Below, piece by piece: positions 990 to 58,728 of a stretch of DNA of 64,000 nucleotides. Within the stretch, counting starts at the first letter, position 1; every line of letters begins with the position of its first letter. Both the position numbers and the translations under genes were made by a program. The notes under the pieces are model-generated. The model worked only from the letters and a program-made list of their open reading frames with translations, searched no databases and was not told the origin of the DNA. The stretch is taken from positions 771,370 through 835,369 of the forward strand of contig NW_003314285.1 of assembly GCF_000143415.4 (NCBI RefSeq), in the 5' to 3' direction. This stretch comes from Selaginella moellendorffii. Its lineage: Eukaryota; Plantae; Lycopodiophyta.

Positions 990-1500
990 ACGTCCAAGGA
1001 AAGATATCGGGAGAGGTTGATTGGTGAGCTTTTGGTTTTCTGTGTTTTATTTTTCCTGCCTGTCATTTGCGTTTCTCTTCTCAAGCGCTTGGACGTGATC
1101 AACGTCGAGATCACGTCGAGAAAGCTGCCGACTACGTAAGAACTTCGACGGTTGTTTTGGAAGCATTCCCGGAGGAGCTGGACAGAGTAAGCCATGAAAC
1201 TTTTAGACACATTGAGCGCTCTTTCTTGACTAATGTTTTCCGCGACCACGCAGTCTTTTGCTGCGCTGGGGCTATTGCTATCGCCGGTGCGCATCATCAC
1301 ATTGACAAGGGCTGGTGTCTTTGCGAGCGCCATTAAGTTAAGTCCGGTCATGAGTTTGCATCTTCTTGGTCCTTTCTAAAATGCGAATTCTTAAAGTCTG
1401 CTACTCGTGGTGGGTGCTTTCGAGTCTAGTGATGCTCGACCGTGTGGACTGGATCGATAAACAGAAGCTCAAAACATTCATTCTCGAGTGCCAATATACT
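990..1500 (+). pseudogene. Rab geranylgeranyltransferase (GGTase-II) beta subunit pseudogene
   Basis: Fragments LLKRLDVINVE, KAADYV, NFDGCFGSIPGG, VFCCAGAIAIAGAHHHIDKGWCLCERH* and [33 protein letters not shown] match the plant RGTB C-terminal half. Frameshifts, deletions and an in-frame stop are present. Confidence 0.85.
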
Positions 1501-1695
1501 CTCACTGTCGAGGCATTTAAATTTCACCTCTTACAAACATGTGGATTGTGTCCCGTTTTGATTCAACCGCTTGTGAAAAGTCCCGTCCTTTCCGATCTTA
1601 TCCAGACGCCACGCCTCGTGCATATTTGGTAAATGATAAAGTCTTCGCACTTTGTATCGATTGCAACGTGAACTTCATGGTAACCTTTGTGTGAT

Positions 1696-2610
1696 CTAAT
1701 AGACCTCCACATGCCACTGTCGGTTTTTCTTCAGTTTCGCAAGTTTGCCACGCCAATCTTCTCCCATCCGCCTTGCAACCTCTTCGAACACCGCTTCCAC
1801 TCCCACCAGCATGTCTTTGCGGCCGCAAAAGTAGATATGGCTGCCTCCATCCAGAAGCTTGAAGATCTCTTCTCCATGCTCCTCCATTCTGTCTTGCACG
1901 TAAAATCTCCCACCCCTCTTATTGCAGCTTTCCCTGCTCAAAGCAGTGTCATATCTAAAGCTCAAAGGGCGATCTCTTGCATATCTCTCAAACTCTTCAT
2001 TATATAGCAGTCTACCAGCTGTTGGAGCTCCCATGAAAAGCCAGGCTGATCCCTCAAACTTGCGAGAACCCATCTTGTCCTCGAGTAATCTCTGCAAGAA
2101 TCCCCGGAATGGAGCCACTCCCGTCCCAGTGGCAACCATGATATGAGAATCACTCGGGTTACTCTCATTCAATAGCATCAATTTCCCAAACGGACCAACG
2201 AGATCGACCTTGTCACCCGGCTTGCAATCGCACAAGAAGTTACTGCAAACGCCCTTCTTGCTCGGATCTTCCTCCCCGGTTTGAGGATCAACATAGATCG
2301 CTCTCTTCACGCACAAGCTCGCGCTCCTCCCGCTGAGATCGTCGCCATACCTAGAAGAAGCAATGGAGTACAAATGGTATGGATGGCGTGTTCCTGGCCT
2401 CTTTGAATTCTCGCCAGGGGGAAGAATTCCATAGCTCTGGCCTTCCCAGAATGGAACATTACCGCCGTGGTCAATGACGATGTGGGACACTTGACCGTCT
2501 CTAGTCAGTCGCTGAATAGAGCTGACCGTGGCTGTGTATGGCAATTGCGATGTGTAGAGATGGAATGGTGGTTTGTTACCACGCTCCAGTAACTTTAGTA
2601 GCCGAGACAT
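1696..2610 (-). CDS. Ferredoxin-NADP+ reductase, root-type-like, intronless, no apparent transit peptide
   Basis: 304 aa. Motifs HIVIDHGGNVPFWEGQSYG, LYSIASSRYGD, GVCSNFLCD, ATGTGVAPFRG, YVQD, YFCG and C-terminal WHVEVY. Confidence 0.93.
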   Translation of the reverse strand: MSRLLKLLERGNKPPFHLYTSQLPYTATVSSIQRLTRDGQVSHIVIDHGGNVPFWEGQSYGILPPGENSKRPGTRHPYHLYSIASSRYGDDLSGRSASLCVKRAIYVDPQTGEEDPSKKGVCSNFLCDCKPGDKVDLVGPFGKLMLLNESNPSDSHIMVATGTGVAPFRGFLQRLLEDKMGSRKFEGSAWLFMGAPTAGRLLYNEEFERYARDRPLSFRYDTALSRESCNKRGGRFYVQDRMEEHGEEIFKLLDGGSHIYFCGRKDMLVGVEAVFEEVARRMGEDWRGKLAKLKKNRQWHVEVY

Positions 2611-2764
2611 TGACCTAGAGTTTTAGACCTAGCTCTTATATTTTAAATCGTCCCGCTCAAAACATAGGGTTTATCAAAAAGGGAAGGGAGAAAGGGGACG
2701 GGCGATTCATTCTGCTAGGTCGAGTATCGATTCCTGTAGATCTTCTCTGCTGCAGATCTTCTCT

Positions 2765-3710
2765 TTGCGATACTTCTCATCTCTGTGCTATATTTTGCTT
2801 TCTCGCAGCTGTGAGCAAGAGATTTCCTGTCAACGAGGTAGATTTCTTGATATCTCGACAGATCGCGAGCTTCTCTACAGATATTTCGGAGAGTTTCTCA
2901 TTCGTTTCTTGCAGATTTCCCCATCGCCGGTCGATCGCTCGCCATGTTTTCTCTCCATCGATACAGGTAATAAGCAACAAGCTCTCCGAAATTTCTACAC
3001 GTCCTATGGCAGGAATCTCCTCAACAAGGTCAAGGTCCAGCGTCACAATGCGGGTATAGTAGATCCGAGTAACAATATTAAGCAGGAGATCTCATCTTGG
3101 AAGTGATCGTCTCGTTTTAGCACTGGATCGCCAGAAGATCGAAGTGGCAACGACGATCGATGCTCAGCCACTCCAGAAGGCCGACGCTGAAACTGGTAAG
3201 TCGTGAGAATCCAACGCATGGTAATGCCGTCTAACTTGAAAAGTTTCTGTGACCAGATGCCGCCACCACTTACATGAAGTTCAAGAAGGACGTGATGGAG
3301 AATCTCGAGCTGCCGGACCTGGACAGCTATGGAGTGGACTTCGTGGAGCGTGTGTACAGTGAGTTCCTCCTGCGCGACAACGATCTCAACGAGCAGCAAA
3401 GGAAGCGCCTCTACGACGTTTGCTCTGCTTATCTGGGGAATGGCAATTCATCGCCTTGGAGCGAGTAAACCAAGGTAGGTTTCTTTGATGGATATGCTCA
3501 AGAGTGATTCACGCCAATGTTCTTTTAGTGGCAACACGGCATTTTTGTTCGACTAAGTCTTTCGGTTCAATTCGAAGTTCTCGTACTGACAGGTATTCAT
3601 GCGTGTGTGGCACTGACTTTTTTTGGCGTGCTTTCACAGCGAAGACAAAGTTCTCAAGCTACCGTGAAAGGTAAATCCTCGGATTATCAAACAACTAACT
3701 AGTCCAACTT
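2765..3710 (+). pseudogene. Unknown multi-exon gene or pseudogene, duplicated at ~22630-23335
   Basis: Coding-like segments (LRNFYTSYGRNLLNKVKVQRH; KFKKDVMENLELPDLDSYGVDFVERVYSEFLLRD) with GT-AG sites and stops. No family recognised. Confidence 0.35.
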
Positions 3711-5047: not shown

Positions 5048-6274
5048 TAAAAGTTTTTACTTTTATATTTATTTTTGTTGGCTATCAATTTTAATTTTAA
5101 TTTTTTTTCTTACTTCATACTTCACTTTTTCTATGCTTGCCATTTCAGCTTCAAAATGTGGAGGCACCTTTGTCAATGGCAGTGTTTCATACCACACAAA
5201 TCCATCCCTTGACCACTGCTACTATATATAAACTATTGCCACCATAAGCACAATCATGGTAGGAATCATTCAATCTGCAATCCTCCTTGTAAACATTAAT
5301 TGGGCAGTGGAATTGTGATTGCATTGTGAGAGAGTGTTAAGCACCAGTTTGACCACGTGGTCAACGTGGGTCAAAGTGAAGTTCAAGGGTTTATTAAGGC
5401 ATGTTAGGGTAAGGAAAAAAAAACTTTAGAGCTTTTGACTTTAAAAAGAGGTATAATATAATTTAGGGAGACTAGATTTTATCTTTTAATGCCGGATCTT
5501 AACATTAGTATCAAAGGAAGTTAGTTGCAATGAGAATTTTATTATTCATAGTGGTGCCAATGATAGTATCGATAGAACTGCAAAAGTTTGGATTATTCAA
5601 AATGTTGTTCATAAGTTTCGAGTTCTTAATCAAAGTCAATAAATTTGTGATTCAACTTGTTATAACACTCGATACAATCCCTTTCACAAAGCAAAAGCCC
5701 CTTATACAAATTATATACCATATGATTGAAAAATGAAAAACACCAAATCATCCACTTTGTATTCTACATATATTTTACATATAGATAATGATAGGAATTG
5801 TATTGTTATTATTGTCCCACTTGTATTCAGCTTAAGTGTTTAGTAGGCTCAACTAGTCCACTTGTACACTGTTATGAATATGACTATGGGTATTGAAAGT
5901 TATTTATCAATAAGTCTTTTTAGATGTCCTTTTTTTATTGCCACAACAATAGGAGGTTGGTATTGCTAAAAGATTTTTCAAACTCCACTCAAGCTAGTTG
6001 AAAAATTGGTCATCATGTTTGTACTTATGCTGAATAAACATAAGGTAGGAACTCATATGTGTTTCTTACTAAGTATATTTGGCTCGATACAAAAAACTCA
6101 TATATTAGCTTTATAAACAATTAAAGGGAATAACTTGAGAGATGTTCTATATAAGTTTAAATATAAAGGGAGAAGGCTCATGAATAAAAGTGCATCTCTT
6201 TTTCCAATCGGTTAAGGGTTTTAGGATATTTGGGGTTTAGTGGCATCCTAGAAGTCTAAATTCAAAAGCTTATA

Positions 6275-6960
6275 AGCTTGCACTTGTTAGTGTTGGGAAC
6301 CCCTATGGTATTGAGTTTGGTCCCTCAATAATTGCTAGGTGATAATTTACCATATTTACCAAAACACTTTTACTATCATGCCCTTTGTGTTGGTTCCATT
6401 TTAGTCCTATTAGCTATTTATGGAAAGTGTCTAAATTTACTAATTGGGCATATCTATGGAATGTAGAAATTATCCTAAATATAATGGTATTGGTCTCATA
6501 TCTAAATCCACAATTTAGCATAACTTGATATTTAATAAGTTTTAAGCTTGTCTCAAAGACTAACTCTTGGTACTAAGGGTAAAAACCCAAGCAGGCATTC
6601 TTCTGGGTGGGGGGTTCTAAATATATAATAAAGATATTAGGTAGGTTAGGTGTGGCTGACCAACCTAAAGCATAGTCTATCTCTTGTTTGTATGTTTGTC
6701 TTTATTTTACATTTGGCTTAAATTTAAGCTTAAGTTTTGTACTATATTAGTTGGTAGAGTACCTATATCTTTGTGTTATGCCATTGGTATGCTGAAATAG
6801 TGTTAGGTTCTGTTTGGCACCATTTTGCATGCTAGTTCTGGCATTGAGATGCTGGATGCTCTAGAATTATTCCAACATCATTCTCTACTTTTGTTCCTTC
6901 GCTCCTTGCGTTGAACGCTCAAAAGTCACTCTGTGCTTCAATTTCTTCACTCTTTGGTTG
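6275..6960. mobile_element. Old diverged LTR relic of the same family as the 9300-16545 element, in opposite orientation
   Basis: Its reverse complement aligns by eye with several LTR segments, e.g. ctatcatgccctttgtg, ctatttatggaaagtgtc and ggtatgctgaaatag. It runs into the N gap. Confidence 0.75.
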
Positions 6961-7678
6961 NNNNNNNNNNNNNNNNNNNNNNNNNNNNNNNNNNNNNNNN
7001 NNNNNNNNNNNNNNNNNNNNNNNNNNNNNNNNNNNNNNNNNNNNNNNNNNNNNNNNNNNNNNNNNNNNNNNNNNNNNNNNNNNNNNNNNNNNNNNNNNNN
7101 NNNNNNNNNNNNNNNNNNNNNNNNNNNNNNNNNNNNNNNNNNNNNNNNNNNNNNNNNNNNNNNNNNNNNNNNNNNNNNNNNNNNNNNNNNNNNNNNNNNN
7201 NNNNNNNNNNNNNNNNNNNNNNNNNNNNNNNNNNNNNNNNNNNNNNNNNNNNNNNNNNNNNNNNNNNNNNNNNNNNNNNNNNNNNNNNNNNNNNNNNNNN
7301 NNNNNNNNNNNNNNNNNNNNNNNNNNNNNNNNNNNNNNNNNNNNNNNNNNNNNNNNNNNNNNNNNNNNNNNNNNNNNNNNNNNNNNNNNNNNNNNNNNNN
7401 NNNNNNNNNNNNNNNNNNNNNNNNNNNNNNNNNNNNNNNNNNNNNNNNNNNNNNNNNNNNNNNNNNNNNNNNNNNNNNNNNNNNNNNNNNNNNNNNNNNN
7501 NNNNNNNNNNNNNNNNNNNNNNNNNNNNNNNNNNNNNNNNNNNNNNNNNNNNNNNNNNNNNNNNNNNNNNNNNNNNNNNNNNNNNNNNNNNNNNNNNNNN
7601 NNNNNNNNNNNNNNNNNNNNNNNNNNNNNNNNNNNNNNNNNNNNNNNNNNNNNNNNNNNNNNNNNNNNNNNNNNNNNN
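6961..7678. other. Assembly gap (N run)
   Basis: Run of N. Confidence 1.
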
Positions 7679-7828
7679 AATATCAGATCATGGCAATATA
7701 AAAGTTTATATAGTGAAGCACTAACAAAACTTTGTACCCTTATAATATATACATCCCAAATAGATAGCAAATAACCATCTTAATTCGAATGTTAAAAATG
7801 AAGGAATAGAGCTAAACTCTCAAGTTTG

Positions 7829-8070
7829 CAACCAAAGAGTGAAGAAATTGAAACACAAAGCAACTTTTGAGCGTTCAACACAAGGAGTGAAGGAATAGGG
7901 ACATAGAATGATGTTAGAATAATCTAGAGCATCTAGCATCTCAATGCCAGAGCCAACATGCAAAATGGTGCCAAATGGAGCCTAGCACTATTTCAGTATA
8001 CCAATGGCATAACGCAAAGATATAGGTACTTTACCAATTAGTATAGTACAAAACTTAGGCTTAAATTTAA
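7829..8070. repeat. LTR-relic fragment, inverted copy of ~6720-6960
   Basis: caaccaaagagtgaagaaattgaa...acaaaacttaggcttaaattta is the reverse complement, with mismatches, of the sequence left of the gap. Confidence 0.8.
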
Positions 8071-9299: not shown

Positions 9300-10446
9300 T
9301 GTAGCGTACGTGGTTTTGACCCTTTATCCTATGGTGATTTACCATAGGATAACACCACGAAGCGGAACCTAAACCCTCTTTGTGCCACGTGACAGATGCC
9401 ACGTGTCACATACCACGTGTCCGTGCCACATGTCCATAGGAACCTGAGGTTCAGGGCCTTGGGCCACTGAACGAAGGAACGGTGCCAAACTCCCAAGCGT
9501 GACGCCAAGGAGTGATGGAACCGGACCACGGAGCAACTCCCGAGCATATAGCCCAAGGAGCGAAGGGACAGGAGCCCGGAGCGACTTAGAACAGTCCTGG
9601 AGCAACCAGCATCCCAATGCCAGGACCAGCACGCAAAACGGAGCCAAATGGAGTCTGGCGCTATTTCAGCATACCGGTGGCCTAACGTGAGGATATGGGT
9701 ACTCCACCAGCTAGCATGGAATGGAACTTGGGCTTAGACCCAAGCCGGACGCAGAACAAGGACAGGCACGCAAGCGGGAGCTAGACTATGCCTCAGGTTG
9801 GTCGGCCATGCCCGACCTACCCACTATCCCTACTATACATTTGGAACCCCCCACACCCCCCCCCCCCNNNNNNNNNNNNNNNNNNNNNNNNNNNNNNNNN
9901 NNNNNNNNNNNNNNNNNNNNNNNNNNNNNNNNNNNNNNNNNNNNNNNNNNNNNNNNNNNNNNNNNNNNNNNNNNNNNNNNNNNNNNNNNNNNNNNNNNNN
10001 NNNNNNNNNNNNNNNNNNNNNNNNNNNNNNNNNNNNNNNNNNNNNNNNNNNNNNNNNNNNNNNNNNNNNNNNNNNNNNNNNGAAATGAGACTAACACAAA
10101 GGGCATGATAGCGAGGGTGTTTGGCAGACACAGTAAGCTATCATGTAGCGATATTGAGGGACCAATCTCAATACGCGAGGGTTCTTATCAAGCCAGTGCA
10201 AGACAGAGCAAAAGAGAACTAACAAGCCGGGCCGAGTATGCTCAGCTAAATAGACACTTAGGAATTCCTTCCTTATGCTCATCCGGCCAAGTACAGATGC
10301 AAAGTCCAGTTTACTAACACTTGAACAAGAGGGACTAATAAAGGGTCCAGCAATACCGACCTCCTGCTATCGTGGCAGTAAGGTAAGAGTGTCCGTAAGG
10401 ACTGGCCGACAGATAACTTTCGATACTTGAAGTCACATTCACGACA
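9300..10446 (-). repeat. 3' LTR (contains an N gap at ~9868-10081)
   Basis: Highly similar to 15428-16545 and adjacent to the PPT. Confidence 0.95.
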
Positions 10447-15427: not shown

Positions 15428-16545
15428 TGTAGCGCACGTGGTTTTGACCCTTTATCCTATGGTGATTTACCATAGGATAACACCACGAAGCGGAACCTAA
15501 ACCCTCTTTGTGCCACGACGTGTCCGTGCCACGTGTCCATAGGAACCTGAGGTTCAAGGCCTTGGGCCACTGAACGAAGGAACGGTGCCAAACTCCTAAG
15601 CGTGACGCCAAGGAGTGATGGAACCGGACCACGGAGCAACTCCCGAGCATATAGCCCAAGGAGCGAAGGGACAGGAGCCCGGAGCGACTTGGAACAGTCC
15701 TGGAGCAACTAGCATCCCAATGCCAAGACCAGCACGCAAAACGGAGCCAAACGGAGTCTGGCGCTATTTCAGCATACCGGTGGCCTAACGTGAGGATATG
15801 GGTACTCCACCAGCTAGCATGGAATGGAACTTGGGTTTAGACCCAAGCCGGACGCAAAACAAGGACAGGCACACAAGCGGGAGCTAGATTATGCCTCAAG
15901 TTGGTCGGCCATGCTCGACCTACCCACTATCCCTACTATACATTTGGAACCCCCTATAGCCCCCCCCCTTGAGAAACACACGCTTTGGGCTTTCACCCCA
16001 AGCCTCCCTTAGTATTAGGAGTTAGTCTCTGGGATAAACTCAAAACTTACTAAATATGGAATGTCCTTAGATTGCGAATTTGGACACGGGACGAACACTA
16101 TTGTGTTCAGGCCGATCTCTACATTCCGTAGATATGCCAAATGAGCAAATCTGGACACTTTCCATAAATAGCATTTGGGACCGAAATAAGACTAACACAA
16201 AGGGCATGATAGCGAGGGTGTTTGGCAAACACGATAAGCTATCATCCAGCGATATTGAGGGACCAATCTCAATACGCGAGGGTTCTAGCCAAGCCAGTGC
16301 AAGACAGAGCAAAAGAGAACTAAGAGCCAGGCCGAGAATGCTCAGCTAGAAACACATAGGAGTTCCTACCTTATGTTCATCTGGCTAAGTACAGATGCTA
16401 AGCCCAGTAAGCTAACACTTGGACAAGAGGGGCTAATAAAGGGAACCAGCAATACCGACCTCCTACCATCGTGGCAGTAAGGTAAGAGTGTCCGTAAGGA
16501 CTAGCCGACAGGTAACTTTCGATACCTGAAGTCACATTCGCGACA
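15428..16545 (-). repeat. 5' LTR
   Basis: Adjacent to the PBS and bounded by the TSD. Confidence 0.95.
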
Positions 16546-18509: not shown

Positions 18510-18770
18510 AAAGCTGAGATTACGTGAGCTGTAAGAACTTCCATTTTGGACGCATAGGAGAATTGCATGCTATAGAAACTTTGAGAGCAGCTAATGCTAT
18601 GTTGGAGCTATTACTATCTCATCAGCTAGATATTTAATAAGATATATTTGAGCAGAATGTACAGACTTGTGGTCATGTCTACTACTCATGGTGGGCGCTT
18701 TTGAGTCTAGTGACGCTCAACCGTGTGGACTGGATCGATAAACAGAAGCTCAGAACTTTCATTCTTGAGC
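18510..18770 (+). pseudogene. Second, more decayed Rab-GGTase beta fragment
   Basis: [30 protein letters not shown]. Confidence 0.8.
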
Positions 18771-18956
18771 CGGGTAACTATAGAGGCCTTTCACCTCTTA
18801 AAAACATGGTCCAGGACACTGATGAAGGCAGCCAACTGCTTGTTACAAGTCCATCCTTTCCGATCTTATCCAGATGCCACACCTTGTGCATATTTGATAA
18901 ATGAAGTTAAAGTCTTTGCACTTCGATACTTTCTCCTTCAATCGACTTTGTGTGAT

Positions 18957-19385
18957 CTAGTGGTCCTCCACATGCCACTGTCAGTTTTTCTTCAGTTTCG
19001 CAATTTGGTCTCACCAACCTTCTCCCATCCGCCTTGCAACCTCTTCGAACACCACTTCCTCATGTCCTTGCAGCCTCAAAAGTAGATATGGCTGCCTCCT
19101 TGAAGATCTACTTGGGTTACTGTCGCATCAAGGGCTTACAATCGTACAAGAAATTACTACAAACGCCCGCCTCTTCCTCCCAGTTTGCGGATCAACACCG
19201 ATCACTCTCTTCAGCATAACCTCGCGCTCCTCAGATCGTCGCCATACCCGGAAGACGCAAGGGAGTACAAATGGTATGGATGGCGCGCCTGGCCTCTTTG
19301 AATTCTCGCCAGGGGAGAGAACTCCATAGCTTTGGCCTTCTCAGAATGGAATAGTAATCTCTAGAGGTCAATGAACATGTAGAGC
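18957..19385 (-). pseudogene. FNR pseudogene (internally deleted copy of 1696-2610)
   Basis: DNA matches the WHVE, PYHLYS and EGQSYG coding segments, with large deletions and frameshifts. Confidence 0.85.
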
Positions 19386-19912
19386 AAATTGGATTTTGAT
19401 ATCAATTTCGAAAAACACCCGTTCAGCACCCCCTCCTCACAGAATAGACCTTGGATCTGTCCCTCATGATCCTAAACTTGAAATTGTACCATTGAATAGT
19501 TCATTGTTAAGGCAAGAGTTCATTGTTAAGATCAAAAGGAACTATGCACCTATTACATATTTATATTATATTGTGAAAGAACCTAAACTGTCCGTATCTA
19601 ACCAATTGAGTTGGACATATGTACGATTCAATCTCAACATGTGGAGCCCAATGGACCAATGGGACCAAATTGGTTATATGTCATGAATGGGCATCACGAA
19701 CGGGCAGACAATTCCATTTTAGATGTGTCATTCTACCTTGCATCTTGTCAACTACGCAATGGAGGTGCTGTGGGGGTCAGTATCTCAAGGACAAGGTCTA
19801 CTTTATCGACACAGTGTTCCCCTAGCTAATCAATATGAACATGTGGTGTACCTCTAGCCAACCAATTGATTTTTCTTATTCCTTTTTAAGGTGATAATGT
19901 TTTTTTTTTCCA

Positions 19913-19921
19913 ATATATAAA
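19913..19921 (+). promoter_or_regulatory. Putative TATA box of MTPSL
   Basis: ATATATAAA about 45 bp upstream of the ATG at 19964. AATAAA occurs downstream of the stop at ~21101 and ~21134. Confidence 0.45.
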
Positions 19922-19963
19922 GAACTTCAAAGAAGGTTCATTCATCACTTTTGTAGCTGAGAG

Positions 19964-21067
19964 ATGGAAGATGTTTTGGCTGAAAAATTGTCAAGAGTTT
20001 GCAAGTTCGATTTGCCATTCATCCCTTGTAGCATTCCCTTTGAATGCCATCCTGATTTTACTAGGATATCCAAAGATACTGATGCATGGGCTCTTAGAAT
20101 GTTGAGTATCACTGATCCATATGAGAGAAAGAAAGCTCTTCAGGGAAGACATAGCTTGTATAGCCCAATGATTATTCCAAGAGGGGAGAGCAGCAAAGCG
20201 GAGCTTTCATCAAAGCATACATGGACTATGTTTGTTTTAGATGACATTGCCGAGAATTTTAGTGAGCAAGAGGGAAAAAAAGCTATTGATATTCTTCTTG
20301 AAGTTGCTGAGGGAAGCTATGTCTTAAGCGAAAAAGAGAAGGAGAAGCATCCTAGCCACGCCATGTTTGAGGAAGTGATGTCGAGCTTTCGGAGTCTCAT
20401 GGATCCCCCACTGTTTGCTCGCTACATGAATTGCTTGAGAAACTATCTGGATTCTGTGGTGGAGGAGGCCTCTTTGCGAATTGCCAAATCTATTCCAAGC
20501 CTCGAGAAGTACCGGCTGCTCCGGAGAGAGACAAGCTTTATGGAAGCAGACGGAGGCATTATGTGTGAGTTTTGCATGGATCTCAAGTTGCATAAGAGTG
20601 TGGTGGAATCCCCAGACTTCGTAGCCTTTGTCAAGGCAGTGATTGATCACGTCGTTCTTGTCAATGATCTCCTTTCCTTCCGACACGAGCTGAAAATCAA
20701 GTGCTTCCACAACTATCTCTGTGTCATCTTTTGCCACAGCCCGGATAATACAAGCTTTCAAGAGACTGTGGACAAGGTATGCGAAATGATCCAGGAGGCC
20801 GAAGCCGAGATCTTGCAACTCCAACAGAAGCTGATTAAGCTGGGCGAGGAAACTGGGGACAAAGATCTGGTGGAGTATGCAACATGGTACCCTTGTGTGG
20901 CATCTGGAAATCTTCGCTGGTCATACGTCACAGGACGCTACCATGGACTTGACAATCCGCTGCTGAATGGTGAACCATTCCAAGGAACCTGGTTTCTACA
21001 TCCAGAAGCCACCCTCATCTTGCCATTGGGATCCAAATGCGGCAATCATCCATTTATCACGATTTGA
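19964..21067 (+). CDS. MTPSL: Microbial terpene synthase-like protein (class I terpene cyclase, single alpha domain)
   Basis: 367 aa, intronless. DDIAE (aa 93-97), R188 at sensor spacing 46 aa before the NSE triad NDLLSFRHE (aa 234-242), and WSYVTGRY (WxxxxxRY). No plant-TPS beta/gamma domain and no RRX8W. Confidence 0.95.
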   Translation: MEDVLAEKLSRVCKFDLPFIPCSIPFECHPDFTRISKDTDAWALRMLSITDPYERKKALQGRHSLYSPMIIPRGESSKAELSSKHTWTMFVLDDIAENFSEQEGKKAIDILLEVAEGSYVLSEKEKEKHPSHAMFEEVMSSFRSLMDPPLFARYMNCLRNYLDSVVEEASLRIAKSIPSLEKYRLLRRETSFMEADGGIMCEFCMDLKLHKSVVESPDFVAFVKAVIDHVVLVNDLLSFRHELKIKCFHNYLCVIFCHSPDNTSFQETVDKVCEMIQEAEAEILQLQQKLIKLGEETGDKDLVEYATWYPCVASGNLRWSYVTGRYHGLDNPLLNGEPFQGTWFLHPEATLILPLGSKCGNHPFITI

Positions 21068-21559
21068 TTTTATGTCTTTGGGAAATGTATTGTGTTCTAT
21101 AATAAACTGGAATTGTTTTGAGTTCTAAAATTAAATAAAAGGAGAAACAGGGTTTAGTGAACGTAGGCTCATCTATCGCGGTTTCGTGCAAATGTGTCTC
21201 CGGGGACTTGCTCACTGCCATAAGAAGTGGGTTAATCAACGAGAATAGTGGTCCTCAGCTCACTCCAAATAGCGCCTTGTTTCAATGTAGACAGTGTTAT
21301 TTAAGTTCCAGAAAAACTGACTGCCTTCTCGGCCCTCGACCATCTCCCTGATCTCAGCCTCGCCATTCACTTGAACGGGCAGGACTTCTTGGCCTCGACA
21401 CAGCAATAGCGCTCGGGCATTGGAGTGATCTCAGTAAGTGCCAGTAAATTTTTCCTAATGCAGCAGTAATTTAATGTTTCTCCTATGTAACACTTGTGTT
21501 TAGTGAGATAGTAGATGTCTTGACTGAAAGACTGGCTAGAGTACAAGCTTGATTGATTC

Positions 21560-21612
21560 TTCATCCCTTGTAGCATTTTCTTTTGAATGCCATCCTGAAT
21601 TTATTTAGGATA
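21560..21612 (+). pseudogene. Short MTPSL 5' fragment
   Basis: ttcatcccttgtagcattttcttttgaatgccatcctga matches ~20018-20070. Confidence 0.8.
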
Positions 21613-22153
21613 GGCGAAGCTATGCTAGAGACAAAGGAGACAGAGGAGACAGAGAAAAAGAAGAAAAGAAGTGGAGTGGTTTACTTGTCTTTAGACTGGA
21701 AAACTCATCAAGAATGGGGGCTGGAATCGATTCTGAACAATGCTTGAGGCCTCAAACTCTCAATCCCGTTGCAAAGCTCTCGGCATCAGCACTCAAATCA
21801 AAATGAAAAAAACCTCGATCTTGCTTACGAACCCGCCTCACGTCCTGGACACCTCATGAAAACTTTGTGAGAAAATAAATAGGTGGATTTCTTCTTTTGA
21901 TTGTTGATCATATAGCCTCTCTGTGGCTTTCTTTTTCGTGTGGTGCTGTGTGAATTGGCATCTTGTGAGTAACTACCGACCAGCCCTGTCAAACAATGTG
22001 TCAATGGCACTTCCAAATGGCACAAGAGGAGCAAAGAATTTCAGATTATTAATCTTTTTGAATGTTGACAAATCGCAGGTTGGTGGCAGCCTTTAAGATT
22101 TTATAACTTGTGAGCTGTTAGAATCAAACTTTGTAGCAAGGTAGCTACTAAGT

Positions 22154-22257
22154 GAGATGAAAGATGTCTTGGCGTTTGGAGTGCCTTCTACCCTTGTAGC
22201 AATCCCTTCGAATTTTACTAGGATATCGGAAGTTACTGATGCAACGGGCTATGAAGA
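22154..22257 (+). pseudogene. Decayed MTPSL 5' fragment including the ATG context
   Basis: gagatgaaagatgtcttggc...cccttgtagc...ttttactaggatatc...tactgatgca matches ~19961-20100 with deletions. Confidence 0.75.
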
Positions 22258-22274
22258 TCCACTGCCTCTCACTA

Positions 22275-22582
22275 AGAGGCTTCCTCCACCAAAAGAATCC
22301 AGATAGTTTCTCAGCAAAATCATGTAGCAAGCACCAGTGGGGGATCCATGAGACTGTAAAGCTCGACATCACCTCCCTCAATCATGACAAAGGGCTTCTC
22401 TTGTTCACTAAAGACAGTTTTCCTCTGCAGCTTCAAGCAGAATATCGGCAGCATTTTGCCTCTTACCTCTGCAATGTTATCAAAAACAAAAAAAATTCAT
22501 GTCATATAGTCCACAAGAATTTCTTTCTTTTCTATCCGTGATCTAAAAGGAATGAATGTTCGGAATGTTGTGTCCTGGATGG
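22275..22582 (-). pseudogene. Inverted decayed MTPSL fragment
   Basis: The reverse complement contains gtgatgtcgagcttt, gtctcatggatcccccactg, gagaaactatctggattct and ggtggaggaagcctctt, matching ~20220-20475. The match is weaker back to ~20045. Confidence 0.85.
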
Positions 22583-23145
22583 CAGCGAGGAGCAATCCAG
22601 CTGCCCAGAATATTCCGCCAGAAGGCCCTCCATTCTGCTCGATTCTTGTAGATCTTCTCTGTGCCATACTTCACTACATTTTGCGCGCAGCTGTGAGCAA
22701 GAGATTTCCTGTCGACGATGTAGATTGCTTGATATCTCGACAGATCGCGAGCTCCTCTACAGATATTTCGGAGAGTTTCTCATTCGTTTCTTGCAAATCT
22801 CCCCATCGTCGGTCGATCGCTCGCCACTCCATCGATACAGGTAATAAGCACAAGCTCTCCAAAATCTCTACAACTCCTACGGCAGGAATCAAAGTCGGTA
22901 TAGAATAAGGATATTAAGCAGGAGATCTGATCGCTGGCGCTGAAACTGGTAAGTTGTGACAATCCAACGCATGGTAACTGCATGACTTCATGGAGCATGT
23001 GTACAATGAGTTTCTTCTGCGCATCTCACGAGCAGGAAAGGAAAGGAAGTGCGTCTATGAGGAATGGCAATTCATCACCTTGGGAGGTAAGTTTCTTTGG
23101 TGGAGATGCTCAGAGTGATGTTCTTTTAAGCATCATGCGTGTATA

Positions 23146-23251
23146 GCTCCGATACCATGTTGGAAGATGGATCTAGACAGGCCGGGGATTGAACCTTGGA
23201 CCTCCTACACCAGTGCCATGAACTGTGTGCATGTTCAGCTTAGTTCCAACA
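23146..23251 (-). mobile_element. Mini-LTR (94 bp) plus PBS, TRIM-like remnant
   Basis: TGTTGGAA...TTCCAACA (23158-23251) is followed directly on minus by TGGTATCGGAGC (iMet PBS). Absent from the paralogous copy near 3600. Confidence 0.65.
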
Positions 23252-24199
23252 TGCTCTAATTCACAGTGAAATAAAATTCTCAATCTACTGTGAAAGGTAA
23301 GTCCTCAAATTTTCAAACAACTGACTATGTCTAACATATGTCCAACAGCATGCACTGGAAACCCCATGAATGAAACCACAGAAAAAATATACAATAAAAC
23401 ACTTACACTTCTGAGGTTACTATGATTTTATTAGCAGGATATTTATAATCATGAAATTAGTTTCAATCCAAACCATTTGTTACTATATATAAACTAAAAT
23501 TTGAATATGAATATTTTTATATTCTATACATTGACATTAGTTGAGGTGATGGGAAGCCTTGATTGTTTTTGAGGAGTGTTTCTTGTTTGAATCTAATTTT
23601 TGTATTATCTAGATTATTTTTATTCTTGTAGCTTTTTATTTTTTTTTCTTTTGCTTTTTCTTCATAGCTATTCCTCATTTGTCCTTTTCCTTTGATTTTG
23701 GAGTAGTAATTAGTGCAAATGATCAATTGAAATCAATTAATAGTGGTATTCACAATATACAATGTAGTTCCTCCAATCCTCTCATTTGTTGAATTCCTTC
23801 TATAGAAATTTTGAAGATAATATGTATTATTAGTTTGATCACTTTATAGTGATTGGCATTTATCATTTTTAGGATGATGCTTAGCTTCTGTTTGAGTTTC
23901 TTACATATTTTCAAAGGACAATAGTAGTATAATAGTTTGAGCATAGCTACTTATGTAGATTGAAGCCTTTTCTTGAATTTTTTCAAATGTATATTGGAAC
24001 ATGTTGACAACTATATTGATAATTTTTAACAATTGCATTATATTTGTTAGAGGCTACCTAAGTTAGTTATGCAATTTAGTGTTCGCTTCCAAAGTCTTTT
24101 ATTTTGTGTAAAGTTATATATATAAAAGTGGATCAAGTTAGGCATATTATTGTTATATATTGTTATATACAGAATAATATCACATTGTATTTCTACAAT

Positions 24200-27100
24200 A
24201 TAAAGCTTCTTAGTAATACGACAATGTCCCACATGCTTGCATATAATAGAAGAGTCATAGTAGGTATGGAGTGAAATAAAGACTAAAAGCACCACTAATC
24301 ATAAATGATTATTAGAATTAATTTCCATAAAGTAAAAGTTACCCTTAGGCAATATTAAGAATGTAAAACAATAAATCATTAGTAAGTGATGTAGAATTTT
24401 TAAACCCATCATAAAACCCACTCAGACATACGGAAGTCAGGTACTTATGTGGCAAATAAGCTATTCATGAAGGAGTGGGTGGCACAGCTGTCCATGCAGA
24501 CTTTAGATCCATGGATAAACCTTTTAAGTTTTACAAACTTTGTCAAAAGAAGATAAATTTTGTTTACACTTTATGGATATTAAACATTCATTGACAATAT
24601 GGATCCTCGTCTAGAAAATCCACAAATGCTAAAATACCAAACTTGTTAAGAATATGGGAAGAAAGTGAAAAAGAAAAAAGAGCTTAAGAAAGGGCTTTAT
24701 AATCAGCTATAATAATTTCTAATCAATAAACAACTTCAAAATTATAAATCTTAAGTTTTGAGTAGTATGACAAATTAAGTTTTTCTTCTTTAATAATGAA
24801 GTAACCATAGTATGATCACCTTCTAATAACGTTTGTAAACCATACAAATATGCATAAAGCTTCTTGAAAACTATATAAATATTATTGCTAAACACTATTT
24901 CTTTGTTGGAGAGTAATTCATCTCTACTAATTGTAATATATAGCTGATGTACGTAATGTTATGACATTGACTAGTATAAACTCTTGAATTTAGACTTCCT
25001 GAGAGATCATATAACACAGTACTATTTAAACTCAAGGATATTTAATCCTAAATACCCCAAACTCTTAATCAATTGGAAAAAAGGTACATTTTACTTATAA
25101 GCAAAATCTCTTGTGTCATTTTTTTTTTGTTTATATAGATATACTTATGCTTTTTTGCATTAATACACCCCAAGATCAATATCATAACTATTCACATACA
25201 AAACAAGTGTAGTTAAAATATGCCAAAATTGGAGGAGTCATCAATAACTCTTTTAGATCTGTAAATGCCCATTTGTTATCCTCAAATTAAATGAAAAATG
25301 ATGTTGATGACTTTAACAATGCTCATAATAGTGTAATAAAATAAAAAATATGATCAAAAAATAATTAAAATATTACACTTTACTTAAAAAGCACTATATA
25401 TCATTCACACACTTTGGAGTAAAGAGCTTTAACACAACCATATGTTTATCAATATTAACTTGCAAATCTATTTGAGATATATAATATTCAAGATGGAAAG
25501 AAGATGATTTACGTGTTTGATCCTTCATCCTCGACAACTCTCTTTTCAGCCTCATCTTTAACTAAACCTCCAACACTTTGTAAATATCATGGATGACTTT
25601 GGACCCAAACACACATTTCGACTGCTTCATCTTTAAATTAACTTTTTGTAATTTATCCAACACTTTGTGAATATCATGGATGTGCTCCTTCTATATCCCT
25701 TTTGAGTGGATCAAGACATCATTGATAAAGTTAATAGTTACCTTTGGCATATCATAAAAAACCTCATCTATCATTTACTAAAAAGTCACTAAACCATTGT
25801 TTAAACTAAAATAGCATTACCAAAAAATTATATAAACCAAATGGTGTACGAAAAACAATTTTGAGAACATCTTCCTTAACTATTAGCACTTTTTAGTAAC
25901 TAAAAGTAGATATAACTTTGAACTAACAACTTCTCCCTAAACAATTTAAAAAATCAGTAGTATAAGGAAGAGGATACATAGTTGATCACTTTGTTTAATG
26001 AGCGATAATTGATGTAGAATTAAATACTTCCATTAAGCTTCATTATAAGATGAAGTTTATATACCTAAGGACTTAGTGACTTCTAGATAACACCCTTTTT
26101 TAATATTTCTTTGACATGTTAAATCTTGATTTTCTTTGGTGACTAATGCTAAACTGAAACTTTGATTAAATGAGCATCCTTAATTAAAATAGGATGACAT
26201 GTTACAATTTTGGCTTAAAAGATATATCAAATTTGAGGAAATCAACGTACTCTTTCTTGAGCCGATCAATCGTTACAACACAAAGACTATCAAAGGGATA
26301 TGAAGAAAGAAAAGAGGAGCAAGACAAAAATATAGTAAAAAGTAATGGGGAAATAAAAGTGATGAAAAATTGAGGGATGAAGTGGAATATAAAATAAAAG
26401 AAATAAAAAAAAAGAGAAATAATAGGGCAAAACCTTAAAGTCATATTTATCATGATTGTGCTGCAATTAGTTTATACCACTGATAAAATCAAAAGTTTGA
26501 CTTTGCACTATTATGCAATAATTAAAGCTTAAACTTGAGATTACTTATATGTATAGTTAGGCCTAGCTCAGCTTGCACACATGTATGTGTACAATTGTTG
26601 TCATAGAAAATGAAAATTGCCTCTGCCGTATAATACAACTATAAATAACAATATATAGTAATAAAAGATAAATTGGAGTTTGTATTAATCAATATGCAAA
26701 GAATGAACTTGGAAAGTAAATATTGTATAAACTTATATTAAGTGAACTCTTTGATGGTAATCCTAAAATAAAGATGAAAGGGTCACTGACTTATTTGAGC
26801 AAGGACTCTTCACTACTTATGTATTTGTTTCCCAAAAAAACACCTATATTAAGCCATTTCAGTACAACAATATTAATATGACATTTTTGACATCAAGGCC
26901 TCCACCCAAAAAATAAAGAATGCCAATATAGAAAATGTTGGCAACACTGATATATGTGGTTAACTTTGTCATATGCCCAATAATAAATATCACAATTACA
27001 ACCGCATACTCTTTGTCCTTAAACACAAACAATAACAATGTTAATTTTTATTAGAAAAGGATCATCTCCCATAAAACATATATGCAACAACAAAAGGAGA

Positions 27101-27450
27101 GGTGATGTCTTATAACATTATATTAGTTGAAGAGCATCAAACTAAAATTAGTGTATATGGAAGGAGCTATACTATATGTTCTGAATAGTGCCATCAATTG
27201 AGTTTGATTGTTTTTGCTGTAATTGTATAATATTAAGCAACTACACCAATTGCTACTCCAAAATTAAAAAAAGGAAAAGTTGCTACTTTACTGATAAGAT
27301 AAAACAAAAAGAAATAAAGCAAAAGAGAAGAAACTCAAAACTTATAAAATTTAAATAATAAAAAATTAAAATCATAAATCAAAGTATTCCTCAAGGACAA
27401 TTAAAGTTACTATTCACCTCCACTAATGTGAGTGTATGAAATATAAAAAT
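24200..27450. repeat. AT-rich decayed repeat region, related to 8.5-9.1 kb and 16.6-17.2 kb
   Basis: Several colinear similarity blocks; no ORF. Confidence 0.5.
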
Positions 27451-27815
27451 GGAATACAAAATTGTGTATATTTAATTATCTAACTTATATATAAAAGTGG
27501 TGGTTTGGATTGAAATGACTACCAAAACCCCACTACATTAATAATAATATACAAAATTGTAATTATACAATTGGACTTCATATATGTATTTTAATAAATT
27601 TATATTTCAATAAATTTTATATAAGATGAACATCAATTACCTTTTTTAACTGTCAAAATATTTAAACATTTATCCAAGTTTTCTAATGACTAACAACTAA
27701 AGTTTTTCAGATAAAAATCTAGGCCAAGAATAAAAATCCAGGCCGCCCTTTGCATACAACCAGGTATGCACATTTTAGAACTATAAGAATTTGAAGAATG
27801 TACAAATAACACTAG

Positions 27816-29448
27816 CTATTTGCTAGACATTTTTGCTTTTGCAAATACAACTCCTGCAAACAGTCCTGCACAACAATAGAAAGCATCTCGAACCATATCA
27901 TCAAGAGAAAACCATTGCCTACCAAAAATGATGCTCAGCAAGTTCGGCAAGCTTGTCGGCACTCTAAACAAGGCGATGCCAGCAACGGAGAGCGGTATTT
28001 TGTTCAGTGAGCCCACAAGACTGTAAGAATAGTTGGTCCTCTTATCAGTCGCAAAACAAACGAAATTTACCTGTAGGTGGTAGGACTTGTTTGGTACAAA
28101 AACCACATAGATGTGAAGCTGATTGCCAAGCCGAACAAGCCACTCAACGTGATAACTAGCCAAAATGTCGGAAGACTCAAAATTGGCCTGCAAACAAAAG
28201 AAAAGGCATCGTTAGCAAAAAAGTTGGACCACGAAAACAAGCACTCACAACGTCGACAAGTACTCAATCTCGTTAAAAAGGAGAATGAGCACGAGACCAA
28301 GAGGCAGGGAAAGAGAATTGTTGAGCAGAACCATCGAAAACTCGCCGAGGTTGCCAGATTTCGTTGCTTGTTTCGCTGTGTCCATTACCTTCCGAAGTGT
28401 CAGCTGTAAAAACACGTGAACGAGAGAGATTATGTGGTGAGAAACCAACGTATCACTCACTGAATAAGCAGCTGTGAGAAAGCAATTCAATATCTGCCAA
28501 GCGTATCCAACTCCGTGGAAAGAAAGATCGGTGAAACCTCCAGCCACAGCAGAGAGAACCTTCATTACTACAAGTTAGGATCTCAGCGTTTTTGGTGAAG
28601 AGTGCAGTCTAAAAAGCAAGTACCATAAGTAATAGAGAGCCCCAGACTTTCCGATTGTGATGCTTGCCGAAGAGATACATTTCTCCCAGCGCGGTCACGA
28701 TATTCGTCATGTTTTTTAGAATTGTTACCATCGCCACGTTCATGTTTTTCAGGCTGTCAACAGAAAGGATTTGGATAAACAACGGAGAAAAGAAACGAAA
28801 ATATTTTTTGCGGTACCTGTAAATGCTGCTGACAAGCATGCCGACAAATATAACGTTCACTGGAAACCAGACTCGAACAAGCTTCCAGGTGATTGGCTCG
28901 ATCGTTATGGCCCCCAGGAAGCTCAGTATCACGACTGCGATGACACTGATGAGGTTCTGCACAAGAAGAAACCAGGACGTTAGTTTCAGCGCAGAAGAAA
29001 CGGAAGAAAGAAAAAAAACGAGACCTGATAAAACATCAAAGAAATCCCTGCATTAAAGTTATATCCAGAAAGAAGGTACTTGTTTAGCAAAATCATACTG
29101 CAAGAGGACGCACAGTACGCCAGTCCAGACACAACAGCCTGGTGCCGAGATTTTCGAGAATTCTTCTCATCACCTTCGACATCCAGATCTTCCAGAGCAC
29201 TGGATAGACGACTTCCGGGAACAATCCTAAAAAGAAACACACACAAAAAGAATTTCAAGAACAAGAGGAAAAAAAGAGCTTTAACTCACCTTGCCGAATG
29301 CGCTCGTCTTATACCTCCGCGAGGACTATTTGGAACTCCATTGACGGGATTGGCTCCATTCAGAGCAGCGTTCTCCAAATCATCGGCTCCATTCCTGGAA
29401 AACAGATCTAAGCGCGAGAGATTGCAGCCTTGCTCACCTCAAAACCAT
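27816..29448 (-). CDS. GONST1: Golgi GDP-mannose transporter (GONST1/2 type), multi-exon
   Basis: SGLAYCASSCSMILLNK, AGISLMFYQ, VWFPVNVIFVGML, VAMVTILKNMTN, the GDP-sugar motif GSLNKIPLS and terminal FAKAKMSSK. Confidence 0.9.
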
Positions 29449-29767: not shown

Positions 29768-31462
29768 TTGAAACAAGGTATCGATCAAATGACCCTCTCT
29801 TTGCTGGATCTGGCTTGCCTAGCTCGAAGCTCCTCGAAACTGGGAGATTTATCAAAATGCATTGCAGTGCACGAGACTATCTCCAGCAGCGAGCACAGGG
29901 ACAGCAGTTACCTCGCGAATCTTGTGCTGCAAATGTATGCCAAGTGTGGGGAAATTGGTCGGGCACTGAGCGTGTTCAGATGTATGAAAAATCCCAACGT
30001 TTTCTCCTACACGATCATGCTCGCGGCACTGGCACAAAACGGGAATCTGGACGATGCCAGAGCCTTGTTCGCCCAGATGCCCGAGCGCAATGTTGTATCG
30101 TGGACGACCATGATCTCATCGTGTGGACAGCTTGGGCTTGTCGAAGAGGCAAAGCAGCTCTTTGATCAAATGCCGGAACCGAACACAGTGACTTGGAACT
30201 CGCTGATTCATACATATGCCGTAACTGGGCATCTTTCTAAAGCGCAAAGTATGTTTGATCGAATGCCTGAAAGGAGTATTGTTTCTTGGAACGAGATCAT
30301 TTCGATGTACGCACAAAGTGTTGAGGGTGGCAAGGCCAAGCTTGTGTTTGATAGTTGTCCTGGATGGGATGTTGTTTCTTGGACAAGTATGATCCAAGCA
30401 TTTGCCTTTTCTGGGGAAATCCAAAGCGCTAGAGATGTGTTTCACGAGATGCCCGAGTGGAATGTGGTGTCTTGGAACACAATGGCTGGCGCGTTTGCGG
30501 AGAACGGGCACGCTGAAGAAGCTAGAATTCTTTTCGATTCGATGATGGAGCGATCGGAAGTGTCGTGGACAATCTTGCTGGGAGCTGCAGAAGATCTCGC
30601 AGAAGCAAAAGCCATCTTTGATAGCATGCCCGAATGGTCTGTCTTCTCTTGCACGGTGATGCTCCAAAAGTATGCCCAGTTCGGGCATATTGAAAACGCC
30701 AAGAGCCTGTTTGATCAAATGCCCGAGTGGAACGGGGTAACTTTGAGCACAATGATATCCATGTATGCCTTAAACGGGTATCTCGTCGATGCCAAGCGCT
30801 TGTTCGATGGCTCACAAGAGAAAAACCTTAGCGCCTGGACAGTGCTTGTTCAAGGATACGCTCAAAACCTGGATCTAAGAAACACCAAAGCAACGTTTGA
30901 TGCAATGCCAGAAAAGAACGTAGTTGCATGGACGTGCATGGTCGAAGCAAATGCCCGATCGGGGCAAATACTTCAGGCGAAGAACATGTTTGATGCATTG
31001 CCCGAACGAAACATCGTCTCGTACAACGTTGTCATTGAGGCGTTTGCGAGCTCTCCGTCAACCATCCATTGGTTTCACGACATGCTGATAAACGGGCAAG
31101 ATCCCGACGAGTACTCGTTCATCAACGTTCTTACCGCGTGCAGCTGCAGCGGGAGCTTGTTCCAGGCGCGGGACTTTTTCGTTTCGATGCAGGGCGACCA
31201 CGGGCTGCAGCCATCGCAACACCATTTTGCATCGATGCTGGATCTGCTGGGGCGGCTTGGACAAGTCCGAGACGCTGAAAAGATCCTGGGCGAGATGCCG
31301 TGTGAGGCGGACTCGGTGACTTGGGCGACCTTGCTTGCCGCTTCGAGGATCCACAAGGCCAACGAAAGTGGCGCTCGAGCTGCCAGGAACGCTCTAGAAC
31401 TTGAGACGATCAAGCCTGGAGCGTATTTGCTAGTTGCCGAGCTTGCAGCTAAAACCATTTGA
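29768..31462 (+). CDS. PLS/E-class pentatricopeptide repeat protein (first ATG at ~29789)
   Basis: Tandem 31-aa S repeats (FDxMPExNVVSW) and an E-domain-like C-terminus (HFASMLDLLGRLG...MPCEADSVTWATLL). No DYW domain. Confidence 0.93.
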   Translation: MKQGIDQMTLSLLDLACLARSSSKLGDLSKCIAVHETISSSEHRDSSYLANLVLQMYAKCGEIGRALSVFRCMKNPNVFSYTIMLAALAQNGNLDDARALFAQMPERNVVSWTTMISSCGQLGLVEEAKQLFDQMPEPNTVTWNSLIHTYAVTGHLSKAQSMFDRMPERSIVSWNEIISMYAQSVEGGKAKLVFDSCPGWDVVSWTSMIQAFAFSGEIQSARDVFHEMPEWNVVSWNTMAGAFAENGHAEEARILFDSMMERSEVSWTILLGAAEDLAEAKAIFDSMPEWSVFSCTVMLQKYAQFGHIENAKSLFDQMPEWNGVTLSTMISMYALNGYLVDAKRLFDGSQEKNLSAWTVLVQGYAQNLDLRNTKATFDAMPEKNVVAWTCMVEANARSGQILQAKNMFDALPERNIVSYNVVIEAFASSPSTIHWFHDMLINGQDPDEYSFINVLTACSCSGSLFQARDFFVSMQGDHGLQPSQHHFASMLDLLGRLGQVRDAEKILGEMPCEADSVTWATLLAASRIHKANESGARAARNALELETIKPGAYLLVAELAAKTI

Positions 31463-47108: not shown

Positions 47109-47362
47109 AGCTAGGGTTTTAGAGCGCGAATTTGAAAACTCTCCAGATTCCAATCCATAGGCAATTAATCCAAATCGATTCGATTAATTCAATCCAACTC
47201 GCGCAACTGTGATTGTTCTTGTGAAATTCGATCACAGTGGAGTGGTCGATCAAAGAAAAGAAGTGCTTTCTACGTGGCTGGCACTTGTCAAGGAATCGAT
47301 CAACACGCACGGATCATATAAATTCTACCATGGAGTAGAAATTTATTAGGGTTTTGGACAAA

Positions 47363-53129: not shown

Positions 53130-54286
53130 TTGCAAACAGTTTAGTTGAGAGCAACCAAGCAAAACTTTCGACATACGACCTGAATGCACACTTGTATACG
53201 ACTTCTCCTGGTATCTACCTTCTACTTTGGTGGTCCTCCCATAGCGATTAGCTGCCGCAAGCTTCAAAGCCGATGAACGAGTAGAATTTACTCTTCCTTC
53301 GCTACAGTTGATAAGTGACCTGGATGGCTTGTTACAAGAAAACTTCTGCGGTTAATAACCAGACCAGCCTCCTAGTAAACTGATCCTCCTACCTGAATAA
53401 GCGTCGCCAGAGGAGGAGAAACATCAGGCCGCCAGTTTGTAGCTTTACTCGAGATGAAGTGAACGGAAGTTGGCTTGCCCTGTACAACAGCATCTAGTAC
53501 TTTGGCACATTTTTCCTGTAAGACGCAACACTCACGTAAACCATTGAAGTAGTCAGCTAGACACACCTTTTCCTCCTTCAAAGCTCTCTCGAGATGAGAA
53601 ATTTGACCCTTGGCTGCAAAACAACAAGGATAAGCTATTATTCCACGAGGGGAAGCTAATTTACCATGCATAAGTGAGTCAAACAACTCCCAGGCGAGAG
53701 TTCCCATCGTATCGTTTGCGCAGCGTCCTTGAGAGAGTTCCAAGTCGAGGGCAACCTCTCTGGCCGCCCCGTGCACATTGATCCAAGTCTTTAAGCGCGC
53801 ACAGGAAGCACCTACACGAGAGAAAAGTACAGAGAGTTACGTAACACGTAAAATTCAATCGCGCACCTTCTCCTCCCACAGCACTAGCTGGTCCTCCCAG
53901 CTCGACTTTAACTTTGCTCGATGAAAACCCATCGTGCAAGCCTTGAAGATACGTGGTAAATCCATCCTTGATGCCAATCGACTCTTTCTGTATCCATGAA
54001 GATCACGATCGCGATCAAACAAAAAAGAAAAAGGAAAGAAGCTCACCAGATTATTGAGGTACTCGCAAGTGAAGCTCCCGTGCCAAGTGTTGTAGTGAAA
54101 ATCCGAGGTAAGGACATGCAAGTGCCCGGAATTGGAAGGATGGATGTAGAACAAGAATGGCATCAGTGCCGCATTGCGTGCGTGTGGAGAAGCCGGATCA
54201 AGCTGGCCCTGCGCCTTGTTGCAAACTGCCCTAAAGCCGATGAGAGGGCAAGGCTCGCCATCGTTCTCCATGATGTGATCCTCCAT
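53130..54286 (-). CDS. XRCC4-superfamily head domain, plant PAXX-like (At5g64010-like), multi-exon; 3' end uncertain
   Basis: PFLFYIH...HLHVLTSDFHYNTW, ESIGIKDGFTTYL...SKVKVEL and MGTLAWELF, followed by a coiled coil. Confidence 0.6.
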
Positions 54287-58002: not shown

Positions 58003-58033
<31 letters not shown>

Positions 58034-58135
58034 TACCTTACCTAGGTAATACACTAATTATAATACTAAAGTATATAGACTGTCTATTTGAGATTAAATC
58101 TAATCCATTAATTCTTATGCATAAGTATGGGTGTA
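55795..58135. repeat. ~110-bp diverged direct repeats (55795-55900 and 58030-58135); possible ancient LTR relic
   Basis: Both contain tactaattataatactaaag. A PPT-like gaggggaggatgg-TGTAAG lies near 57980-57998. Confidence 0.4.

Positions 58136-58695: not shown

Positions 58696-58697
<2 letters not shown>
58405..58697. mobile_element. MITE-like element with long TIRs in a TA/CA microsatellite
   Basis: atgctttattttgttaaagtggaactt pairs with aagttccactttaacgaaataaagcat. Inner inverted repeat ccacatgccattt / aaatggcatgtgg. Confidence 0.75.

Positions 58698-58728
<31 letters not shown>

Follow-up and report, generated by a model that had tools for sequence, protein, structure and literature searches.

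A microbial-type terpene synthase gene in the nuclear genome of Selaginella moellendorffii, very probably SmMTPSL26

Introduction

A gene for a terpene synthase of microbial type that lies in plant DNA raises three questions, namely which member of a known family it is, whether it is still a working gene, and whether it belongs to the plant at all. Non-seed plants possess a second terpene-synthase system, the MTPSLs, which are of microbial type and are thought to have been horizontally transferred. The gene considered here was found in a 64,000-nucleotide stretch of DNA from Selaginella moellendorffii, referred to below as the window. In this species, the one from which the family was first reported, the SmMTPSL family is made up of 48 genes with 0 to 7 introns, and its members contain only the alpha domain and have mono- and sesquiterpene synthase activities (Li et al. 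2012, summarised in PMC6779861 and PMC7826640). Terpene synthase activity has been reported for 14 members (PMC7826640). SmMTPSL5, 15, 19, 23, 33, 37, 46, and 47, which are 323 to 372 aa long and have 0 to 1 intron, use GPP as well as FPP in vitro, and alamethicin or MeJA induces some of these eight (PMC7826640).

The initial annotation of this DNA had placed the gene among the MTPSLs of non-seed plants and had stopped short of naming the family member. The placement is supported, as an alpha-only class I enzyme in plant nuclear DNA matches the published family (PMC6779861, PMC7826640). A name can now be proposed as well, very probably SmMTPSL26, by elimination of accessions, and the finding itself is not new. 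Taken as a whole, we hold with high confidence that this is a nuclear S. moellendorffii SmMTPSL gene, very probably SmMTPSL26, that it is unspliced, and that it encodes a class I cyclase.

A single-domain class I cyclase

The coding sequence is an intact, ATG-initiated, and uninterrupted open reading frame of 367 aa (Table 1). The motifs of a class I cyclase, DDIAE, R187, N234/S238/E242, and R325-Y326, are all present in near-invariant columns. Conservation was scored in an alignment of 73 relatives. In the first metal-binding motif, D93 is found in 71 of the 73 and D94 in 63, while at position 97 there are 35 sequences with D and 7 with E, and DDxxE is thus an ordinary variant of the motif. 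The column of R187 holds arginine in 66 of the 73. The NSE triad is still more uniform (N234 in 73, S238 in 69, and E242 in 70), and the C-terminal motif is conserved to a similar degree (W319 in 62, R325 in 72, and Y326 in 70). The intact intronless reading frame and the four motifs (DDxxE, the Arg sensor, the NSE triad, and WxxxxxRY) had all been called in the initial annotation; the motifs are plain from the sequence itself, and the reading frame is exact and, as discussed below, colinear with assembled contigs.

Table 1. Features of the locus and of the surrounding duplicates, in window coordinates
Feature	Position	Strand	Basis or remark
TATATAAA box, with CCAAT before it at 19910-19914	19914..19921	+	sequence read; putative promoter
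Transcribed unit, unspliced, ~1.2 kb	19959..21159	+	contig cover, four public runs
CDS, microbial-type terpene synthase, 367 aa	19964..21067	+	draft locus SELMODRAFT_414574; probably SmMTPSL26 / XP_024535054.1
First metal-binding motif DDIAE, residues 93-97	20240..20254	+	sequence read and alignment
Arg187, conserved diphosphate-sensor arginine	20522..20524	+	alignment; presumed role from class I cyclase structures
GT...AG "intron" of the 2010 draft model, 135 bp, really coding, holds the NSE motif	20660..20794	+	protein alignment, contigs
Second metal-binding motif, NSE triad NDLLSFRHE (N234, S238, E242)	20663..20689	+	sequence read and alignment
C-terminal WxxxxxRY, W319-SYVTG-R325-Y326	20918..20941	+	sequence read and alignment
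Two AATAAA signals, 21101-21106 and 21134-21139	21101..21139	+	sequence read; putative poly(A) signals
Decayed MTPSL fragment, 5' end of CDS	21505..21612	+	77% identity to CDS nt 1-105 of both scaffold paralogs
Decayed MTPSL fragment	22157..22243	+	sequence comparison
Decayed MTPSL pseudogene fragment, residues 78-170, in-frame stops	22275..22526	-	74-79% nt identity; tblastn 33%
Left piece of broken NAD_binding_1 oxidoreductase duplicate	18677..19351	-	76-82% identity
Right piece of the same duplicate, 5' region of oxidoreductase gene	22647..23335	-	83-95% identity
Intact NAD_binding_1 oxidoreductase gene	1696..2610	-	intact copy to which the two pieces correspond

The microbial character of the protein, its lack of any beta or gamma domain, and its lack of a transit peptide had likewise been proposed from the letters of the sequence, and each of these is borne out. 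The profile search suggested at that stage returned PF19086 (Terpene_syn_C_2, microbial-type terpene synthase) as the sole Pfam match, with an E value of 4.8e-28 over residues 88-281. At E<=1 the 367-aa protein has no match to PF01397 or PF03936, and a beta or gamma domain is absent. Among NCBIfam models there are weak matches to bacterial sesquiterpene cyclases, including 4-epi-cubebol, isoafricanol, selinadiene, epi-isozizaene, and pentalenene synthases, all of which fall far under the equivalog cut-offs. The best match in a sequence search of the PDB is AriE (9lpb, 5e-19), followed by BcBOT2 (8h6q), VenA (7y9g), Cop4 (8gr5), and aristolochene, pentalenene, and epi-isozizaene synthases; at E<=1 every terpene synthase matched is microbial and classical plant TPSs are not among the matches.

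Structure prediction leads to the same relatives. The AlphaFold model, built on the 73-sequence alignment, is confident throughout (mean pLDDT 95.6, pTM 0.93) and consists of a single, nearly all-helical domain and a short C-terminal hairpin. When the model was compared with the PDB by Foldseek, the best 50 matches were all fungal or bacterial class I cyclases, enzymes of a single domain, with TM scores of 0.72 to 0.83, and classical plant TPSs were not found among these 50. When 1.84 billion representatives were searched exhaustively and without a profile, 586 proteins were found at E<=0.001, only 7 of which reach E<=1e-30. The six of these 7 that were checked all belong to S. moellendorffii, and the seventh is a 178-aa fragment. 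After Selaginella, the next-best relatives are Streptomyces terpene synthases with 25-30% identity, which agrees with the published view of a microbial-type family. By these comparisons bacterial and fungal TPSs appear to be nearer to the protein in sequence than the typical TPSs of plants are.

The fold is common to the window protein and the bacterial and fungal class I cyclases AriE, BcBOT2, VenA, Cop4, Copu9 (7ofl), and pentalenene and aristolochene synthases, and the metal-binding motifs, Arg sensor, and RY pair are shared with bacterial and fungal sesqui- and diterpene cyclases. However, identity to these enzymes is only 17-21% by structure and 25-30% by sequence, and the gene of the window protein resides in a plant nucleus and has eukaryotic signals. 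Classical plant TPSs (TPS-a to TPS-h, with a beta-alpha or gamma-beta-alpha architecture) have the alpha-domain class I chemistry and the DDxxD/NSE logic in common with it, but the window protein is without the N-terminal beta domain (PF01397) and PF03936, and its gene has 0 introns where classical TPS genes have 12-14 (PMC6779861). At the N-terminus, residue 14 pairs with residue 25 of the bacterial enzyme in the PDB sequence match. The protein therefore starts level with a bacterial enzyme and leaves no room for a transit peptide, so that it should act in the cytosol, as would fit a cytosolic sesqui- or monoterpene synthase.

Paralogs, relics, and local history

The exact protein is on record at NCBI and UniRef and is encoded at 791333-792436 of scaffold GL377589.1 (1,997,012 bp) in the S. 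moellendorffii assembly GCA_000143415.2. The MTPSL loci found on this scaffold number three, the window gene included, and all are intact paralogs that lie within 48 kb, between 744 and 792 kb. XP_024535052.1, at 744359-745468, is 81% identical to the window protein. XP_024535136.1, at 767144-768247, is 96% identical and lies on the opposite strand, inverted, 3.1 kb to the left of the window start.

Identity to the 96% paralog amounts to 96.3% over window positions 19833-21163, a span that takes in the transcription unit together with some 126 bp of promoter, TATA box included, and falls to 76% further upstream (19448-19672). The two coding sequences have only 24 differences, with a dS of 0.031 and an omega of 0.64. 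Together with the low dS, the step from 96% to 76% suggests that a duplication or gene conversion took place recently. The 81% paralog gives a dS of 0.35 and an omega of 0.29, the latter a value that points to purifying selection. Overall, these substitution patterns indicate what may be a recent duplication or conversion atop an older, selectively constrained family. Retroposition was considered as the origin of the intronless copy and rejected, since the homology with the 96% paralog already sets in some 126 bp before the contig 5' ends and takes in the TATA box; the lack of a poly(A) tract after the 3' end also speaks against it.

By tblastn there is no second intact MTPSL copy in the window, only decayed pieces. 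The fragments just downstream of the intact gene stem from one or more further MTPSL copies (Table 1). Gene and relics sit between two pieces of a broken NAD_binding_1 duplicate, which are 76-95% identical to window positions 1500-3700.

Which family member

SmMTPSL26 is listed as XP_024535054.1 (Table S2, PMC7826640), and the window gene is annotated in RefSeq as a 367-aa protein. Apart from the window protein, all cluster members that are at least 47% identical carry accessions other than XP_024535054.1, and each scaffold apparently has its own block of RefSeq numbers. XP_024535054.1 would then be left, by elimination, for the window protein. We are fairly sure of this equation, which comes from accessions and their numbering. 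SmMTPSL26 and the window gene would then have in common the species, the scaffold, the alpha-only class I fold, 0 introns, and a length of about 367 aa. No difference between the two proteins is known, and a 2012-era record differs at T366M. The name "(E)-2-epi-beta-caryophyllene synthase-like" given by NCBI is weak evidence for SmMTPSL26 when taken alone, as the same label is attached to proteins that are just 29-33% identical.

Alternatively, the gene may be a true SmMTPSL other than SmMTPSL26, an uncharacterised recent paralog whose product profile may differ. We regard this as unlikely. In its favour, the identity with XP_024535054.1 is inferred only, paralogs of 96% and 81% identity lie within 48 kb, and omega against the closer copy is 0.64. 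Against it stands the fact that the other MTPSL proteins found on the scaffold are all under different accessions. The UniParc entry UPI00027F0371, which is numbered between the 2010 and 2018 batches, can be read on both sides. It differs from the window protein only at T366M and there has the C-terminal FIMI of the 96% paralog, but, this last-but-one residue aside, it equals the window protein wherever the latter differs from that paralog. Such a difference would be natural in a cDNA clone if the primer for its amplification had been designed on the neighbouring paralog.

The eight SmMTPSLs assayed in PMC7826640 were also considered as candidates. They belong to the same family and are other members, as their cloning primers do not match the start of the window gene; one of them, SmMTPSL37 (XP_024517709.1), is in the cluster at 47% identity to the window protein. 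In a full-text literature search that covered papers other than Li et al. 2012 and Jia et al. 2016, SmMTPSL26, SmMTPSL22, and SmMTPSL17 were absent from the main texts.

Transcription and gene structure

The queried stretch occurs in 20 public runs, which come from nine studies of the same organism, and the twelve best contain about 0.7 of the 1601-base query, a share close to the gene in length. Four runs, each from a different study, supplied contigs that were aligned to window positions 18800-22800. That the runs are RNA is a guess, supported by assemblies of small size (8-37 Mb) and by contigs that break off sharply at the gene edges. Cover extends over 19959-21140, 19977-21159, and 20004-21130 in three runs, and over 19989-20533 plus 20582-21151 in the fourth. 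The contigs show neither strand nor exact transcript ends. The aligned contigs have 0 mismatches, 0 gaps, and no joints. In the flanks, cover is limited to 30-47-nt pieces of unrelated contigs (18854-18884, 19692-19721, and 21187-21233) and one contig at 22679-22800. Mismatch-free, colinear contigs confined to the gene are what an unspliced mRNA with a length of about 1.2 kb would give, and the gene is very probably transcribed and unspliced. From the TATATAAA box down to the contig end furthest 5' (19959) the distance is about 38 nt, and the AATAAA signals lie just before the contig 3' ends at 21130-21159.

The 2010 draft model of the gene, SELMODRAFT_414574 (EFJ24463, 322 aa), is without residues 233-277, a 45-aa gap, and is otherwise 100% identical to the window protein. 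Since the contigs of three runs pass straight through 20660-20794, the 135-bp intron of this model is an annotation error, and the 367-aa reading is the expressed one. The draft models of both neighbouring paralogs (414571, 350 aa, and 414565, 318 aa) are also shorter than their RefSeq proteins.

A 322-aa protein without the NSE motif would imply that the locus is an inactive relic, and the decayed MTPSL fragments that adjoin the gene could be taken to point the same way. A pseudogene is nevertheless very improbable here, as the reading frame is uninterrupted, the catalytic residues are all conserved, the supposed intron is crossed by contigs, omega against the 81% paralog is that of a constrained gene, and the predicted structure shows no region of low confidence.

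Genomic context

The window also encodes three PPR proteins and proteins with eIF5/eIF2B, galectin, and NAD_binding_1 oxidoreductase domains, as found in a Pfam scan of its open reading frames, and some 6.7 kb downstream of the synthase there is a called, intron-bearing gene for a TPT transporter. The G+C content of the gene region is 0.44 and matches that of the flanks. The view that the gene is embedded in plant DNA, as stated in the initial annotation, therefore holds, with PPR genes, the intron-bearing TPT gene, eIF5, and an LTR pair around it. Microbial contamination or misassembled endophyte DNA, which the intronless gene and the Streptomyces enzymes as closest relatives outside Selaginella might bring to mind, has a negligible probability, because the gene is located at 791 kb of a 2-Mb scaffold, is flanked by plant genes such as PPR, TPT, and eIF5, matches its flanks in G+C, has a TATA box and AATAAA signals, is surrounded by paralogs and decayed copies, is only about 30% identical to any microbial protein, and recurs as an identical stretch in runs from nine studies of the same organism. 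Contamination is thus excluded for practical purposes, and a microbial-type, alpha-domain-only class I terpene synthase in genuine plant nuclear DNA is supported.

There is no sign of a biosynthetic gene cluster. No P450, reductase, or oxidase is found among the called genes up to 10 kb on either side, and no tailoring genes are found among open reading frames of at least 150 aa scanned against Pfam, a scan in which small-exon genes were possibly missed.

Other elements of the window were noted in passing. Direct repeats of about 1 kb, at 9412-10446 and 15515-16545, are 92-97% identical and 6.1 kb apart; their interior is without an open reading frame of at least 100 aa, and the pair looks like a decayed or non-autonomous LTR retroelement. 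Very A+T-rich intergenic stretches, with a G+C content of 0.22-0.32, are found at 6000-8000, 24000-28000, and 54000-60000, and in the first of these the overlapping reading frames on both strands at 6911-7774 are typical of low-complexity sequence. The PPR proteins are encoded by three long intronless reading frames, at 29768-31462 (+, 564 aa), 45318-47153 (-, 611 aa), and 61120-63234 (-, 704 aa).

Proposed function

Transcription from the gene's own TATA-type promoter would yield an unspliced mRNA of about 1.2 kb, translated into a 42-kDa class I terpene cyclase with a single alpha domain. As no transit peptide is present, the enzyme would probably remain in the cytosol with the FPP pool. By analogy with the class I cyclase family, three Mg2+ ions would be held by D93/D94/E97 and N234/S238/E242. 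Together with R187 and R325-Y326, the metal ions would bind the substrate, farnesyl diphosphate, by its diphosphate group and cause it to ionise. The allylic cation formed in this way would then be cyclised in the hydrophobic helical pocket to a sesquiterpene hydrocarbon. SmMTPSL26 (EC 4.2.3.137) is said, with reference to the work of Li et al. in 2012, to convert FPP to (E)-2-epi-beta-caryophyllene. If the window gene is SmMTPSL26, this compound would be its main product, and GPP would probably be accepted in vitro too, as for other SmMTPSLs. The analysis shows that the gene is intact, that its product has this fold and the conserved catalytic residues, that it is set among plant genes, and that the transcript-like contigs are unspliced; what the enzyme converts and makes, its place in the cytosol, and its identity as SmMTPSL26 are inferred.

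Significance

The gene is a known and annotated member of a family described in 2012, and it has very probably already been characterised. The locus adds no new kind of biology, as the family is the textbook second terpene-synthase system. What it does document is an NSE motif that was wrongly spliced out in the 2010 GenBank model SELMODRAFT_414574. It also shows that the initial annotation was able to tell the family from the bare letters.

It is also conceivable, if rather improbable, that the gene is not SmMTPSL26 but a very young duplicate (dS 0.03 against the 96% neighbour) whose product spectrum is drifting towards something new. If true, the locus, in which three copies are intact, others are decayed, and the pieces of a host oxidoreductase pseudogene lie on either side of the gene, would record the expansion of a 48-member family by local DNA duplication and gene conversion. 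The locus also shows a small birth-and-death cluster made up of three intact paralogs within 48 kb and relic fragments.
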